Of a stretch of DNA of 64,000 bases, positions 11,836 through 17,800 are shown one piece after another. The first letter of the stretch is position 1. The number at the start of each line of letters is the position of its first letter. The stretch lies in sequence record LR756502.1. One strand, given 5' to 3'. The notes below the pieces were generated by a model. The model was not told the DNA's origin and made no database searches. It saw nothing but the letters and a program-made list of their open reading frames with translations. The position numbers and the translations under genes were made by a program.

Positions 11836-12219
11836 ATGAAACATTTAGAATCATATAAGATATTTGAGTCAATTGATGAATTAGAGCATTACAATCCAAG
11901 TAAATCTAGTCAATTTAGGGCGGAGATAAAAGATCTTCTAGCCAATATAATTGATGATGGGTTTGATGTTAATGTAATATGTGTTGGAAACGATGGATAT
12001 TTCTCCATAAAGAAACCACTAAATCCTAATTTTGAGATGTTTAACATAAGTGATGTTAGGGAAGATGTTGTTAGACTAATTGATTTTATGTCAGATAGAT
12101 ATGATTTTCATATACAAGTAGACTCTAATAAATTAATCGATTTATCGTTTTTTTTGAGTGAATTTGAGGTAGGAAGAATCGTATCAATCGTAACTTTACA
12201 CCTGTGTAAAAAATATTAG
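11836..12219 (+). CDS. N-tagged DLxDxGF paralog
   Basis: MKHLESYKIFES; IKDLLANIIDDGFDV; FNISDVREDVVRLIDFM. Confidence 0.8.
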   Translation: MKHLESYKIFESIDELEHYNPSKSSQFRAEIKDLLANIIDDGFDVNVICVGNDGYFSIKKPLNPNFEMFNISDVREDVVRLIDFMSDRYDFHIQVDSNKLIDLSFFLSEFEVGRIVSIVTLHLCKKY

Positions 12220-12244: not shown

Positions 12245-12829
12245 TTACATGATTTTATTGATAATTTTATTGAACCAATTGTTTCTTTGGACGGTCTTTC
12301 CTTCATTTAAAAATCCATCCATCCAGTCTTCTATATGTTTTGGTGGTTTTGGTTGTGTCCTTTCAAAAGTTATATCAATACATAGTATGTGAGATTTTGT
12401 TAGTCCACTCAAAGATATAGATTCAATTTGTGAAATCCATGTTGATCCATCTTTTGGATTGTCTCGGTCCTTTAAATCAACCGGTGGAATATATATAAAG
12501 TCACCTTTAGTGACTTGTCTATTATACTTATCATTTTCAAATCGTATGGAAATTCCTTTAGTTGAAATATTTTTACTATCCGATATATAAGAGATTAGAA
12601 AACATAAGCTATCTCTTATATCCGAAAATACATGCATTCCGCTGTATTTGTAACTGTAAAGATCAATAGCACCGACACCACCTCTGAATCTATCAGATGG
12701 TGATATCCTAACATTATATAAGTCTTGACTCATAGAGCCTATCGAGGTCTCTATATAATATCCATTATCTGATAAATCCAGGAGACAATCCTTTATTGAT
12801 CCAAAAATACTTATATCTAGTTCTGTCAT
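12245..12829 (-). CDS. DLxDxGF paralog without N-tag
   Basis: IKDCLLDLSDNGYYIE; FSDIRDSLCFLISYI. Confidence 0.7.
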   Translation of the reverse strand: MTELDISIFGSIKDCLLDLSDNGYYIETSIGSMSQDLYNVRISPSDRFRGGVGAIDLYSYKYSGMHVFSDIRDSLCFLISYISDSKNISTKGISIRFENDKYNRQVTKGDFIYIPPVDLKDRDNPKDGSTWISQIESISLSGLTKSHILCIDITFERTQPKPPKHIEDWMDGFLNEGKTVQRNNWFNKIINKIM

Positions 12830-13026
12830 AGTACAATTATTTCACCAAGGTTGTGGGACTTCACCATCCATTTAAAATTATGCTTATCTAGTATCTTCAC
12901 GACTTTATCTCTCATAGCGTTTGAATTGCCTATAATTATATACAATGGTGTCTCGTGTCTTAGGACAAAATCCTCGACCATACTATCAACATCAACATGT
13001 TTAACTCCGTGTAAATCCAATATCAT
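12826..13026 (-). CDS. stand-alone Smr-like domain protein
   Basis: LDLHG motif and IIIGNS loop in 66 aa; TATATTTG upstream. Confidence 0.65.
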   Translation of the reverse strand: MILDLHGVKHVDVDSMVEDFVLRHETPLYIIIGNSNAMRDKVVKILDKHNFKWMVKSHNLGEIIVL

Positions 13027-13102
13027 TATTTACAAATATAATAAATATATTTTTATAATACAACAAATTTTCATTCGATCATATAAAAAGAAAAAATATG
13101 TT

Positions 13103-13285
13103 ATGAGCGAAATGTCATCAATGTCACCAATGCAAGAAGCACCAGACCCAAGATGGGTTAATGAGAGATACCTTTTGGATATTATCAAAAAACAATTAGG
13201 TATAACAGATGAAGATATGAGAAATATCTCAATTGTAAAATCTAAGGTTAGAGAAGCTAATATTGATAAAGTTTTAGATAAATAA
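13103..13285 (+). CDS. small C-tagged protein
   Basis: Ends VREANIDKVLDK; start MSEMSS inferred within the longer track ORF. Confidence 0.6.
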   Translation: MSEMSSMSPMQEAPDPRWVNERYLLDIIKKQLGITDEDMRNISIVKSKVREANIDKVLDK

Positions 13286-13316
13286 AACTTTTATAATTTT
13301 TTGCAATATAAAAAGT

Positions 13317-13404
13317 GTTGGGTGGTTAAATCGACAAAGTTGCTTTATTGGTAAAATGCATCAGTCTTACCAGGACAAGGAGTAAAACATCCATATCATC
13401 TAAC
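13317..13404 (+). ncRNA. candidate small structured RNA
   Basis: Ends pair (GTTGGGTGGT/ATCATCTAAC); internal hairpin TGGTAA/TTACCA; promoter-like motif before, terminator after. Confidence 0.35.
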
Positions 13405-13405
13405 T

Positions 13406-13434
13406 AAAAACCTCTCTAATCGAGAGGTTTTTTT
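13406..13434. terminator. bidirectional intrinsic terminator
   Basis: AAAAACCTCTC-TAATC-GAGAGGTTTTT. Confidence 0.8.
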
Positions 13435-13450
13435 ATTTTTAAGTATTTCA

Positions 13451-13846
13451 TTAGAATCTATGGAATTTAATATCTATTATACACTTATCAGTATCTCGAT
13501 GGTAGTGCATTGACTTATAAACTATCCAAGACGATCCAATATTACCAATATTACCAATTGTTCTTGAAAAGAATCCATGCTTAACACATCTAATACCATA
13601 TACAGATTCTAATTGTTTAATTTTCTCTGAAATTTCCTGATCATAGAATGATTCTAATTCCTTAGGACTTAATCTCTCAGGTATTTTAATACTTAGTTGA
13701 ACAGTATCTTCTTCAAATTCTGTTGTTACTTCAAAGTCATCATATGATACTTTAATATCATCGAAGACGTCCATTATTTTAGTTTGAGTGTCTTGTTTCC
13801 TATTCTTAGGATAATTAAATGATTCGAAAGTTTTAACGTGTCTCAT
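13451..13846 (-). CDS. N-tagged hypothetical protein
   Basis: MRHVKTFESF; TAATATATA upstream. Confidence 0.75.
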   Translation of the reverse strand: MRHVKTFESFNYPKNRKQDTQTKIMDVFDDIKVSYDDFEVTTEFEEDTVQLSIKIPERLSPKELESFYDQEISEKIKQLESVYGIRCVKHGFFSRTIGNIGNIGSSWIVYKSMHYHRDTDKCIIDIKFHRF

Positions 13847-13872
13847 ACTTTATATATTAAAACCTCTATCTA

Positions 13873-14262
13873 TTATTTAGCTTTTGTATCTATGAATTTG
13901 GATAACCCTTTTACAATATAAACAGGAATATCAACGAATATACTTGAGAATATAACTGTAAAAAACAACGATCTTAAATTACTCGTGATATAGTCAATTG
14001 TTAATGAGTGTTTATCAAGTACATGAAAAAATGTAAATACTATCATAGTTATTAAAGCGGCAAACCACATAGCATTCGGTTTCCACCACTTTTTTGAAGA
14101 TAGGTCACTGAACCAGTCTAATAGAGATGTGTGTGTCATTCCATAAAATGCAGTTGATAGTATAATTATATAAGTCCAATTAAGTCCAATACAAAAAGCG
14201 ACCAATTCTGGCTGGAGTCCTTGTTGCCATACAACATCCCATAGTCCAATGTTTTTATCCAT
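13873..14262 (-). CDS. three-TM membrane protein (holin-like topology)
   Basis: Three hydrophobic helices, basic C-terminal tail. Confidence 0.55.
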   Translation of the reverse strand: MDKNIGLWDVVWQQGLQPELVAFCIGLNWTYIIILSTAFYGMTHTSLLDWFSDLSSKKWWKPNAMWFAALITMIVFTFFHVLDKHSLTIDYITSNLRSLFFTVIFSSIFVDIPVYIVKGLSKFIDTKAK

Positions 14263-14277
14263 TTAGTATATATAATA

Positions 14278-14309
14278 TTTGGTATATTGATATATTATTA
14301 CTATATTTG
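14278..14309 (+). promoter_or_regulatory. Bacteroidota-type primary-sigma promoter (TTTG-N20-TATATTTG)
   Basis: TTTG 14278-14281, 20-bp spacer, TATATTTG 14302-14309; matches -33/-7 consensus. Confidence 0.7.
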
Positions 14310-14353
14310 TGTTAAGGTATTTAATTTATACCGAAACCAAAATAACAAATAAG

Positions 14354-14582
14354 CCTATATAAGTCACTTACGGCAAATGAGTGGTGAAAATTAGGATAAC
14401 CTTTGCCGAGGTTATAGGGATAATAAACCTGTTGGTCCCGCAGTAGATTTCAGTGACCCGTCATACTGTTACAATCGAACTAAAAGACGTGTGATAGAGA
14501 ATGAAGAGAATGCGAACTCAGACTTCTTGATAAAATTGACTGGGATATGTGTCTGTCGCAAGACGCAAACCCAGTCAATTTT
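14354..14582 (+). ncRNA. candidate structured ncRNA or 5' leader with kissing loops
   Basis: Hairpin loops CGGCAAA and TTTGCCG are complementary; GCAA tetraloop; 13-bp terminal stem followed by T-run; no ORF. Confidence 0.55.
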
Positions 14583-14608
14583 TATTTTAAACAATTAAAA
14601 ATATAAAA

Positions 14609-14851
14609 ATGAACAAGGACGAATTACTACAAGTGATTAATACAGATTTGGGTTACAATTTTGAGTCTGATTTATATGGATTTAATATGTTAACACGAAC
14701 AAGGTATACTAATGTTAATAGTATACCAGCTGCTTATTTTGCATCTCTGGACAAGACAAAGTTATATAAGATTACATGTGAGGATGTATCGGTTAGTGAT
14801 CTTCCCAATCAAGAGTTAGAAACTTTTAATGAAATAGAAATACAAGACTAA
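14609..14851 (+). CDS. hypothetical protein
   Basis: First ORF of a coupled three-gene run. Confidence 0.65.
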   Translation: MNKDELLQVINTDLGYNFESDLYGFNMLTRTRYTNVNSIPAAYFASLDKTKLYKITCEDVSVSDLPNQELETFNEIEIQD

Positions 14852-15225
14852 TGAGTAAAGAAAAAGTAAAATGGATGGACAAACCAGAGGATCATAATTA
14901 TCCTGCGGCTGAGTCCTATTTGTCTTTGTTATTTGATAAAGATGATGTTAATCAATTAATATCTAGGTTAGATAAAGCTGATATATCTGAGTTCAAGGCT
15001 AAAGATATCTTCAGAGCATCCAAACTATCACTTTTAGGTATAAGTAATTCTCACGTTGATAAGAATATCGAGAAGATAGAAAATGAAAAAGAATTATCGC
15101 CAATTTTATTGGTTCGGGATTCAAAGACAAGAACTGTTATTATCGCAGATGGTTACCACCGAATGTGTGCTGTCTATCACTATGATGAGGATTGTTTGAT
15201 CCCATGTAAAATTGTTAGTATATGA
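14851..15225 (+). CDS. ParB/Srx-like domain protein
   Basis: PILLVRD...IIADGYHR motif. Confidence 0.7.
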   Translation: MSKEKVKWMDKPEDHNYPAAESYLSLLFDKDDVNQLISRLDKADISEFKAKDIFRASKLSLLGISNSHVDKNIEKIENEKELSPILLVRDSKTRTVIIADGYHRMCAVYHYDEDCLIPCKIVSI

Positions 15226-15509
15226 TAATTAAAACAAAGTTCAAATGTAAATCAAATTGTAAGACTTCACCGAGAATGGGTACATCTGCTACGTTTTCAG
15301 ATAAATTTATTGAGGGTAAATACTATGACGTTGAATATGAGACATGGTCATTTGATGATGGATATAGGTTAAATAATGGTTGGAAAAGCTATTTAGTGGT
15401 TGATGAGAATGGTTTAAAAGAAAAAATGTCAAGAGTAACGTTTAGAGCTATTTTCTATACAGAGATTGATGATATTAGAAATGAAACTATTAATGATATT
15501 CTAAAGTAA
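15222..15509 (+). CDS. C-tagged hypothetical protein
   Basis: Ends IRNETINDILK. Confidence 0.7.
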   Translation: MIIKTKFKCKSNCKTSPRMGTSATFSDKFIEGKYYDVEYETWSFDDGYRLNNGWKSYLVVDENGLKEKMSRVTFRAIFYTEIDDIRNETINDILK

Positions 15510-15542
15510 CTTAAAAATTTATTAAAATTACGATGGTTGTGG

Positions 15543-15980
15543 TTAATAACGATGAGCAAATTCTCTTGGTGGAACAAACTCGATTGATATATCGTCAATT
15601 GATTCAGTTGGGAGGTTATTTACTATACCAATATCTCTAACTGGTGTTTCAACTCCAGTAAAATCCACACTATACCAAGTGGATGCCTCATACCCCTTCA
15701 AATGATAGTATATTGATTTTATCCACATCTTATCATCAAGTTGAGCAATTAATTCATTTACCGAATCCTTAATATCATTGATATTAAATCCTAGTTTTGA
15801 TGATCTACCATACTCCATTCCTGGATTCAATATTCGTATATTTAAATTGAAGGAGATGTTGCTAAAAATAACATCAAACCCATTATCTAAAATATCTGAT
15901 AAGGCATCCTTACATAGTGGCCCGAGTTCGTATTCATCGCCAACTTCAACGAAGTCTTCAAATATTTTTAGGTATTTCAT
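15543..15980 (-). CDS. N-tagged DLxDxGF paralog
   Basis: MKYLKIFEDF; CKDALSDILDNGFDV; FNINDIKDSVNELIAQL. Confidence 0.8.
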   Translation of the reverse strand: MKYLKIFEDFVEVGDEYELGPLCKDALSDILDNGFDVIFSNISFNLNIRILNPGMEYGRSSKLGFNINDIKDSVNELIAQLDDKMWIKSIYYHLKGYEASTWYSVDFTGVETPVRDIGIVNNLPTESIDDISIEFVPPREFAHRY

Positions 15981-16017
15981 GTTAAACTATATATTAAATT
16001 AATAGTATAACTAATAC

Positions 16018-16542
16018 ATGAAGAAAACACTATTTATTAATCTATTTGGTGGACCAGGAACAGGAAAGTCCACACTATGTGCATCAATATTCACTGAGTT
16101 AAAAATAAGAGGTGTTGATTGTGAAATGGCCTTGGAATATGCCAAGGATGTTGTTTGGGAGGAAAGTTTTACCAAACTTAAGAATCAGATTTATATTTTT
16201 GGTAAACAACACTCACGTATACATCGACTAATAGGTAAGGTTGATGTTGTTATTACCGATTCTCCTTTAATAAACTCTATTGTATATGACCTAACCGAGA
16301 ATACACACTTGAAGAGTTTGGTTCTTTATGAGTTTGGTAAACTAAATAGCATCAATTACTTCTTGACTAGAGGTACCGATTATAATCCAAATGGGAGAAC
16401 TCAGACAATCGAAGATGCTCTGAAGGTAGATATGAAGTATAAAGAGTTGTTAGACGATAACAACATACCATATCACGAAATAAAAATTGGATCGGATAAC
16501 TCCAAAATTATCGCCGATGAAATTATTAGGATGATTTCTTAA
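16018..16542 (+). CDS. P-loop nucleoside/nucleotide kinase-like ATPase (AAA_28/NadR-like)
   Basis: GGPGTGKST Walker A; VVITDSP; RTQT. Confidence 0.8.
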   Translation: MKKTLFINLFGGPGTGKSTLCASIFTELKIRGVDCEMALEYAKDVVWEESFTKLKNQIYIFGKQHSRIHRLIGKVDVVITDSPLINSIVYDLTENTHLKSLVLYEFGKLNSINYFLTRGTDYNPNGRTQTIEDALKVDMKYKELLDDNNIPYHEIKIGSDNSKIIADEIIRMIS

Positions 16543-16552
16543 TATATAATTA

Positions 16553-16939
16553 ATGAGGTTTCTTAGGAGTTTTAATGAATCGGTCAACTTCTCAATTATC
16601 AGGGATATATTGCTAGACTTAACAGATGATGGGTTTAAATTTGATGTGAAGTGGATGCCAATTCAGTTTTTTAAAAAGGAAATAGCTAGTGGAAAAAATT
16701 ACAAACCACTGGATATTGTTGTCACTCTATCTCGGAGTGAGTTTACAAAAAGCGATATTAAGGGAACAATTGATAGATTGTCTGGATATATGGAAAGTGA
16801 GGGATATCTAATAGATGATGGTTTTGGTGGTGGTCGAGATTTGGATGGAAAAATCGGTCAAATTAAAAAATTCATGACAGTAACTATTAGGTATGAATTC
16901 TCACCACTTAGTTTGATGAAAGCAAAATCGAAATTCTAA
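16553..16939 (+). CDS. N-tagged DLxDxGF paralog
   Basis: MRFLRSFNES; IRDILLDLTDDGFKFDV; FTKSDIKGTIDRLSGYM. Confidence 0.8.
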   Translation: MRFLRSFNESVNFSIIRDILLDLTDDGFKFDVKWMPIQFFKKEIASGKNYKPLDIVVTLSRSEFTKSDIKGTIDRLSGYMESEGYLIDDGFGGGRDLDGKIGQIKKFMTVTIRYEFSPLSLMKAKSKF

Positions 16940-17260: not shown

Positions 17261-17800
17261 TTACCTGAAACGGTAAGACCAAGGTTGATCACGTTCATTT
17301 GGCACTACCTCACCAATTATATCATCCGACCCAACTAGCTTATAAACCTTTTTTATTTCCTTTAATACTTGTTCAGCATTCATTTTCTTAGGTTCATATT
17401 GCATAGCCTGGTCAGCTAAATACTTTCTATTCTTAATATTAAGATATCCTATACTCTTACCAACTCGCCTCTTATATACTTCAAGTGTAGGCCATTTTGT
17501 TTTAATCTTCTTAAGTGAATTTATCTTAGACATTATTACCTTAGATTCGACATCAGTAATATCGGTTTTATTAAAATGTATATTTTCTAGAGTGTCAATT
17601 AAAACATCCAAATTAGCATAAATGTCTAATAATTGTGGAAGTACTTGTTCTTTTACTTTTCTTGGATCCAAAAATTGAGTTACTGTAAATGCAATAACGG
17701 TGATTGGTATTGATAGTATTGTTTTAAGTATTTTACCGATAAACTCTTCGTTTATGGACTCACTTGCTGAGTAGGATTCGAATTTTTTAAGATGTTTCAT
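17261..17800 (-). CDS. N-tagged hypothetical protein
   Basis: MKHLKKFESY...INEE followed by a hydrophobic helix. Confidence 0.75.
   Translation of the reverse strand: MKHLKKFESYSASESINEEFIGKILKTILSIPITVIAFTVTQFLDPRKVKEQVLPQLLDIYANLDVLIDTLENIHFNKTDITDVESKVIMSKINSLKKIKTKWPTLEVYKRRVGKSIGYLNIKNRKYLADQAMQYEPKKMNAEQVLKEIKKVYKLVGSDDIIGEVVPNERDQPWSYRFR

Follow-up and report, generated by a model that had tools for sequence, protein, structure and literature searches.

A predicted structured non-coding RNA of huge phages without a match among known RNA families

What is encoded in the 346-nt gap between the divergent genes 13873-14262 (-) and 14609-14851 (+) of a huge phage genome? The window studied here is a 64,000-nt stretch of LR756502.1, a 642,428-bp uncultured phage genome (window coordinate + 62,000 gives the record coordinate, with 100% identity over window 13000-16500). 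It is one of the four largest curated genomes of Al-Shayeb et al. (2020), in which the genomes over 634 kb are placed in the "Mahaphage" clade and are predicted to replicate in Bacteroidetes (PMC7162821). Huge phages are known for carrying translation genes, tRNAs and CRISPR systems, but almost nothing is known about their non-coding RNAs. The original prediction proposed that the gap holds a promoter-to-terminator RNA of about 270 nt with kissing-loop hairpins and no recognised family, acting as an ncRNA or as an attenuating leader for 14609-15509.

The observation itself was confirmed. The TTTG at 14278-14281 is followed by a 20-nt spacer and TATATTTG at 14302-14309. Hairpin 1 (CACTTA 14365-14370 / TGAGTG 14378-14383) carries the loop CGGCAAA, and hairpin 2 (ATAACC 14396-14401 / GGTTAT 14410-14415) carries the loop TTTGCCGA, the two loops being complementary over 6-7 bp. 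A GGGAT/GTCCC stem lies at 14417-14421 / 14435-14439 and a 13-bp stem at 14532-14544 / 14570-14582, followed by TTTTTATTTT. The segment holds only ORFs of 32-41 aa on either strand and its GC content is 0.38-0.41, against 0.23-0.33 in the flanks. The + strand folds at -71.4 kcal/mol, better than all 200 shuffles (z = -3.9), while the - strand gives z = -2.7.

Is it conserved? BlastN against GenBank phages found one relative, LR745206.1 (634,780 bp), with 81% identity over the core, and this RNA was the only stretch of a 3.5-kb query conserved at the DNA level. Exact-word scans with conserved blocks added 7 IMG/VR contigs of up to 436 kb and 45 metagenome contigs, giving 54 copies (47 distinct), mostly from lake metagenomes, and a covariance model built from them finds exactly one copy per locus. 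Every full-length copy has the same layout of a promoter box, about 255-275 nt, and then a hairpin and a U-tract. The family is narrow, with a mean column identity of 78%. Additionally, since all homologs were collected with exact words from the two most conserved blocks, part of the apparent invariance of P5 and of the L4 loop (see below) could come from how they were found. Two other patterns, each leaving one block free in order to find members with a divergent P5 or KL1, recovered only members already known in IMG/VR, although one of these scans was not exhaustive.

The structural model rests on a MAFFT alignment (A2, 44 distinct copies), RNAalifold, per-sequence folds and pair counts on the covariance-model alignment (A3, 47 sequences). 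Its parts in the window are as follows:

14278..14281 (+), -33 element TTTG of a Bacteroidota-type promoter
14302..14309 (+), -7 element TATATTTG (consensus TAnnTTTG), with the inferred transcription start near 14314-14317
14316..14332 (+), P1, the 5'-terminal hairpin GGTAT / ATACC with a 7-nt loop
14333..14353 (+), J1/2, a conserved A/C-rich single-stranded linker (GAAACC..AAnAAnAAAUA)
14354..14395 (+), P2 (CCTA 14354-14357 / TAGG 14392-14395), which encloses hairpin P3
14364..14384 (+), P3 (hairpin 1), whose loop L3 CGGCAA (14371-14376) is the 5' strand of kissing loop KL1
14396..14415 (+), P4 (hairpin 2), whose loop L4 contains TTGCCG (14403-14408), the 3' strand of KL1
14417..14446 (+), P5 hairpin (GGGAT / GTCCC with a 13-nt loop) plus GCAGTAG, a near-invariant 30-nt block and the proposed recognition face
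14446..14476 (+), P6, made of P6a (GAT 14446-14448 / ATC 14474-14476) and P6b (GTGAC 14453-14457 / GTTAC 14468-14472), with GTCATAC (14460-14466) in the loop
14489..14495 (+), GTGTGAT, the 3' strand of the pseudoknot with the P6 loop 14460-14466
14497..14528 (+), P7 arm, with outer stem GAGAA/TTCTT, a 4x4 internal loop (consensus GRAU/UGAA), inner stem GAG/CTC and loop AATGCGAA, in which TGCGA 14511-14515 is the 5' strand of KL2
14532..14590 (+), P8, the putative terminator hairpin (13 bp + 7 bp), with apical loop GTCGCA 14555-14560 (the 3' strand of KL2), then the U-tract 14579-14588

Concerning the ends of the unit, TAnnTTTG is present in 46 of 47 copies at a fixed distance from P1 (its T, A and TTTG being invariant in A2), while TTG lies 19-20 nt upstream of it in 42 of 47 and TTTG in 36 of 47. 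This is the -33/-7 consensus of Bacteroides and Flavobacterium sigma-A promoters, in agreement with the predicted host phylum, and the motif is also over-represented in the window as a whole (123 occurrences against 94 +/- 9 in shuffles). At the 3' side, a P8 of 11-24 bp followed by 5-8 U, or by an interrupted U-run, is found in every full-length copy, as in intrinsic terminators. A sigma-70 promoter and simple terminator scanner was not informative, missing the terminator because the hairpin has an internal loop. Promoter activity, termination and the transcript ends (about 14314-14317 and 14583-14590) are inferred from sequence alone.

Over 72 proposed pairs and 3249 cells, 97.4% are canonical, against 30-44% when the 3' partners are slid by 1-3 columns; 45 pairs show double changes, and 0 of 500 shuffles reach any of the observed measures. 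The nested helices were part of the model that made the alignment, which favours them; however, P2, P3, P6b, P7 and P8 differ in sequence from clade to clade and fold in each sequence on its own. In P1, 100% of cells are paired and 3 of 5 pairs show changes on both sides (for example A-U 37 / U-A 9). No pairing partner was found for J1/2, in which many columns are invariant. All 5 pairs of the P2 helix show double changes (CCUGU/ACAGG, CUCAU/AUGAG, UCCGU/ACGGA, CCUUC/GGAGG), as do all 3 scored pairs of P3, whose stem differs in nearly every clade. The outer pair of P4 occurs as C-G 34 / A-U 9 / G-C 1 / G-U 2. P5 pairs are 100% canonical but do not vary. All 5 P6b pairs show double changes with 99.6% of cells paired, while P6a is 100% paired. 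The P7 architecture, with an inner stem of 3-4 bp and a 7-nt loop in the family, appears in every per-sequence fold, with double changes in 3 of 3 outer and 2 of 3 inner pairs. Finally, all 15 stem pairs of P8 show double changes.

Three tertiary pairings were not in the covariance model used to align the sequences, yet they are 95-100% paired and each contains compensatory changes. The first, KL1, is the loop-loop pairing of hairpins 1 and 2 that had been predicted over 7 bp. Its 6 pairs (CGGCAA with UUGCCG) are 100% paired in 47 sequences, and its middle pair is C-G in 42 and U-A in 5 (CGGUAA/UUACCG), with no single-sided change. The second is a pseudoknot between the P6 loop GUCAUAC and GUAUGAC about 25 nt downstream. 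Its 7 pairs are 99.4% paired, 4 show double changes, and on a tree built without these columns the variable pairs changed state 6-12 times. The third, KL2, pairs the 7-nt loop of P7 (AUGUGAA) with the 7-nt apical loop of P8 (AUUCACA). It is 95% paired, and its middle pair is U-A in 38 and C-G in 6 (UGUGAA/UUCACA versus UGCGA/UCGCA, the latter in the window, the clade we label L004 and the copy L130). KL1 and KL2 each rest on one covarying pair that changed only about twice on the tree, and their covariation support is therefore real but thin, whereas that of the pseudoknot is strong. A 4-bp helix (GUCG/UGAC, columns 184-187 with 203-206 of A3) is also 98% paired with one covarying pair. It excludes both P6a and the pseudoknot, remains possible and may be an alternative conformer.

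Two details of the original prediction did not hold against the 47 homologs. A GTC-GCAA-GAC GNRA tetraloop had been proposed to cap the terminator stem, but it is better read as a 6-nt loop GUCGCA closed by a 7-bp stem, and its TCGCA (14556-14560) is the strand that pairs with TGCGA in KL2. The proposed CAGTA/TACTG stem has its second pair mismatched in 44 of 47 sequences, clashes with a covarying helix and the pseudoknot, does not follow the changes that the pseudoknot follows, and is not supported.

Could the element act as DNA, or encode a small protein? It does sit at a switch of gene orientation in the window. However, the compensatory changes preserve pairing and include many G-U pairs (an invariant U-G in P5, 19 in P4, 16 in P3) which would be A-C on the other strand or in a DNA cruciform, and promoter and terminator are conserved in one orientation. 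The longest + strand ATG ORF in any copy is 18 aa, minus-strand ORFs of 16-45 aa change frame and length between clades, and indels of 1-2 nt are scattered through the alignment. A DNA-level element (origin, packaging site or protein-binding array) or a coding gene is already disfavoured and is the least likely reading.

Is it a known RNA? A scan of the whole window against Rfam 15 (4227 covariance models), a check proposed beforehand, gave 0 matches at gathering thresholds. At E<=10 only weak hairpin-type hits to the terminator stem appeared (best 25.6 bits against a threshold of 48) and none to the body of the RNA, while nothing consistent turned up in 8 homologous loci. ARAGORN found no tRNA or tmRNA in the window. 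Resemblances to 5S rRNA, the 16S rRNA 1080-1100 region, the SRP Alu domain and group I intron cores amounted to short shared words in non-equivalent structural positions without Rfam support, and were dismissed. No description of this RNA was found in full-text searches on huge-phage ncRNAs either, although an unnamed entry among the more than 10,000 candidate structured RNAs catalogued from IMG/VR (PMC10690425) may overlap it. A catalytic RNA with the invariant block as active site would fit a compact, pseudoknotted fold around a strictly invariant core of about 30 nt, but no known ribozyme family matches and nothing in the context points to a substrate (no repeats, no intron-like interruption of a gene, no retroelement), making this very unlikely.

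The genomic context bears on whether the RNA is a cis-acting leader, that is a riboswitch or attenuator. Related phages share a loose synteny: F6, RpiB, F5 (F5 and F6 being our family labels), two small membrane proteins, sometimes a divergent AdoMet decarboxylase, then the RNA, followed by paralogs of a repeated family and a roughly 70-aa Smr-like protein. The immediate neighbours and their orientation vary, there are two different upstream arrangements, and the downstream block is inverted in one clade. Pfam gave no RNA-related partner among the neighbouring proteins, the hits being a below-threshold Smr match, AAA_28, and AdoMet decarboxylase in other loci. In about two thirds of the loci the next gene is convergent and ends at the terminator, where the RNA cannot be a leader. 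In the window and 10 other distinct copies (12 of the 54 loci) the next gene is co-directional and starts within about 50 nt of the end of the RNA, mostly 10-25 nt, with no TAnnTTTG box seen in the few gaps that were read; these co-directional genes belong to different families in different loci. In the one clade where they are always co-directional the U-tract is interrupted (UUUCUUGUUUU), as expected for a leaky terminator, although this is a single evolutionary event. KL2 touches the terminator loop, and the upstream fold could in principle influence termination. In the alignment, inspected without a systematic search for alternative folds, no anti-terminator pairing was seen, and the only conserved contact with the terminator is to its loop rather than its stem. 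We consider a dedicated leader unlikely, but in the window's genome and in one clade read-through probably also supplies the genes just downstream.

The original interpretation was thus partly supported: a promoter-to-terminator non-coding RNA, its covarying kissing loops and the absence of a known family hold, whereas an attenuating leader for 14609-15509 is not supported as a general statement. Our preferred explanation, with a confidence of about 0.7, is that window 14278-14590 (+) is an independent gene for a new family of highly structured ncRNA of about 270 nt, carried by a clade of huge phages predicted to infect Bacteroidota. This value blends about 0.9 for an autonomous structured ncRNA gene and about 0.4-0.5 for the mechanism below. 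The sequence analysis itself establishes a conserved host-type promoter at a fixed distance from the first helix, a 5'-terminal hairpin (P1) and four locally closed modules (P2/P3/P4 locked by KL1, the invariant P5, P6 locked by the pseudoknot, and P7/P8 locked by the 5-6-bp KL2 through the apical loop of the terminator hairpin) ending at a U-tract, the lack of a conserved ORF, + strand specificity, and retention of the RNA while neighbouring genes change. It also shows strong purifying selection, in which helices may change sequence as long as they pair, while one face is not free to change. About 30 nt from the P5 hairpin through GCAGUAG (columns 125-154 of A2) are virtually identical in all copies, and parts of J1/2 (GAAA..AA.AA.AAAUA), the KL1 loops and GAAYUAAAAG are invariant too. 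What we infer beyond this, besides transcription itself, is that the RNA acts in trans as a stable, compact particle, whose 5' hairpin and tied-down terminator would protect its ends from nucleases, with the covarying helices and three tertiary locks as scaffold. The invariant face (P5 hairpin with its loop, GCAGUAG, GAAYUAAAAG and the A-rich linker) would bind a partner, most likely a conserved host or phage protein or RNA, so that the RNA would work as an RNP scaffold or decoy.

Alternatively, the invariant unpaired stretches (P5 loop, GCAGUAG, J1/2) could be seeds of a base-pairing sRNA, for which the stand-alone layout with promoter and terminator is typical, and long invariant single-stranded segments are present. 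Within the 64-kb window, however, no complementarity to these segments longer than 10-12 nt was found, which is what we would expect by chance (judged without a shuffle control), and three tertiary pairings and eight helices are far more structure than known base-pairing sRNAs need. This reading is unlikely as well.

A serious, if still doubtful, variant compatible with the main explanation concerns the form in which the RNA acts. Covariation cannot tell intra- from intermolecular pairing, and the two pairs of complementary loops (L3/L4 and L7/L8) might pair between molecules, building dimers, rings or a larger lattice or cage through head-to-tail contacts, as in phi29 pRNA rings and in the ROOL and GOLLD nanocages encoded by phages and prophages. 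In ROOL and GOLLD, loop pairings first called tertiary from covariation turned out by cryo-EM to be intermolecular bridges (10.1101/2024.12.08.627333). P4 follows P2 with no linker, and P4-P2-P3 can therefore stack into one rod with the complementary loops at opposite ends. P8 varies from 11 to 24 bp with a 0-6-nt linker, the two lengths not correlating positively (r = -0.41), while the P7 arm keeps a constant length, which is hard to fit with a rigid side-by-side intramolecular contact. On the other hand, internal loops and bulges in P2/P3 and in P8 could provide the bends needed for intramolecular kissing, the P8 lengths come from minimum-free-energy folds that include A-U pairs with the U-tract, and the RNA is much smaller than ROOL or GOLLD. 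If the variant is true, which we regard as improbable but not excluded, this would be a new class of self-assembling phage RNA, a roughly 270-nt counterpart of those nanocages, with loop pairs at the ends of the P4-P2-P3 and P7-P8 rods building rings, filaments or a cage during infection, and the P5 face displayed to capture a host factor.

Compared with described systems, it works most like the stand-alone ornate RNAs of phages (pRNA, GOLLD and ROOL) but is not a member of any of them. The phi29-family pRNA is likewise a phage-encoded, stand-alone RNA with two mutually complementary hairpin loops, which there pair between molecules to build a ring. However, pRNA is about 120-174 nt, its 5' and 3' ends pair in a closing helix on a three-way junction, its loop pairing is 4 bp and it belongs to small Bacillus podophages, whereas our RNA does not match its model, has ends that do not pair with each other, two separate 5-7-bp loop pairings and a pseudoknot, and sits far from any recognisable packaging gene. 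GOLLD and ROOL are also ornate, protein-independent phage RNAs of unknown function with kissing loops first seen by covariation, but they are 2-3 times larger (about 600-800 nt), often lie next to tRNA islands and occur in other host phyla, while no tRNA lies in the window and their Rfam models do not match. The tmRNA, which some huge phages encode (PMC7162821), is similarly a string of pseudoknot-closed modules in an RNA of a few hundred nt, but our RNA has no tRNA-like domain, no 5'-3' closing helix and no tag reading frame. Riboswitch aptamers with loop-loop contacts (purine L2-L3, cobalamin L5-L13) followed by a terminator share the order of promoter, folded domain with kissing loops and intrinsic terminator, but this RNA is not tied to a downstream gene and no riboswitch family matches.

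An RNA under such strong sequence and structure constraint, kept as a single copy per locus in dozens of related giant phages while the genes around it are shuffled, is likely to do something central in infection, candidates being the sequestering or re-targeting of a host factor or the building of an RNA-only assembly. At about 270 nt it is small enough for direct structural work (cryo-EM, crystallography, chemical probing) and for expression in laboratory Bacteroidota, and it also gives a sequence and structure marker for this phage clade in lake metagenomes.

Finally, the possibility of a cellular RNA copied by the phage was examined by scanning 185,579 species genomes with the family's signature, which returned only one real hit, and a search for the native phage variant of that hit in IMG/VR found nothing. 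The hit is a 4.8-kb contig of a Bacteroidetes MAG (CAIRRW010000057.1) in which the 5' 180 nt of the RNA run straight into a 5'-truncated rpsE followed by L15, secY, map and infA, and we read it as an assembly chimera or a recombinant rather than as a host homolog.

Screening of 185,579 species genomes for the structured RNA led to only one real hit, the contig CAIRRW010000057.1 (locus L166 in our set, positions 1-700), assigned to the "uncultured Bacteroidetes" MAG bin-7887. The contig starts with the promoter and the 5' 180 nt of the RNA (helices P1 to P6, up to GAATTAAAAGAT) and then runs in frame into ribosomal protein S5, which lacks its first ~17 codons and is followed by L15, SecY, Map and IF-1. 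It is either an assembly chimera at a short shared word or a real phage-host recombinant. The RNA part is a distinct variant with its own compensatory changes in P2, P3 and P6b. Concerning the fold of the RNA itself, a 4-bp helix was detected between 14474-14477 and 14492-14495 of the window (columns 184-187 and 203-206 of alignment A3, the covariance-model alignment), which is 98% paired and has one covarying pair. It is mutually exclusive with both P6a and the pseudoknot and may therefore be an alternative conformer.

Differences were also observed at the 3' end of the RNA. In the clade where the downstream genes are co-directional (loci L003, L007, L108, L119, L123, L148 and L162), the U-tract is interrupted, harboring UUUCUUGUUUU instead of 5-8 uninterrupted U. 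Additionally, the linker in this clade contains a second copy of UUCACA that can pair locally with the P7 loop. The interrupted tract may represent a leaky terminator, although it is a single evolutionary event.

Analysis of the genomic neighborhood showed that a ~66-74 aa protein bearing an LDLHG motif is encoded at 12,826-13,026 of the window, on the minus strand, and within ~1-3 kb of the RNA in 28 loci. It presents a weak match to the Smr nuclease domain (Pfam E-value = 0.003), which is below threshold. The protein stays near the RNA even where the intervening genes differ, which could reflect either plain synteny or a functional link. In about 20 loci (L002, L103, L104, L128 and others), a 124 aa S-adenosylmethionine decarboxylase (Pfam AdoMet_dc, E-value = 5e-26) is established immediately upstream of the RNA on the opposite strand and is transcribed divergently from the RNA promoter, while it is absent at that position in the window's genome. 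Furthermore, the window contains many paralogous small proteins that start with MK/R-x-L/V-K/E-x-F-E-x-F/Y, located at 11,836-12,219, 13,451-13,846, 15,543-15,980, 16,553-16,939 and 17,261-17,800. The same family, with 76 members in 43 loci, flanks the RNA in the related phages, and no Pfam match was found for the one member that was tested.

Across the whole 64 kb of the window, the TAnnTTTG box occurs 123 times on both strands, compared with 94 ± 9 occurrences in mononucleotide shuffles, which is consistent with it being the general promoter box of this phage. No tRNA or tmRNA gene lies in this 64-kb stretch. Finally, a 9-bp hairpin followed by a T-rich tail is located at 14,703-14,727 on the minus strand, inside the ORF at 14,609-14,851, and was the only site flagged in this region by a simple terminator scan.
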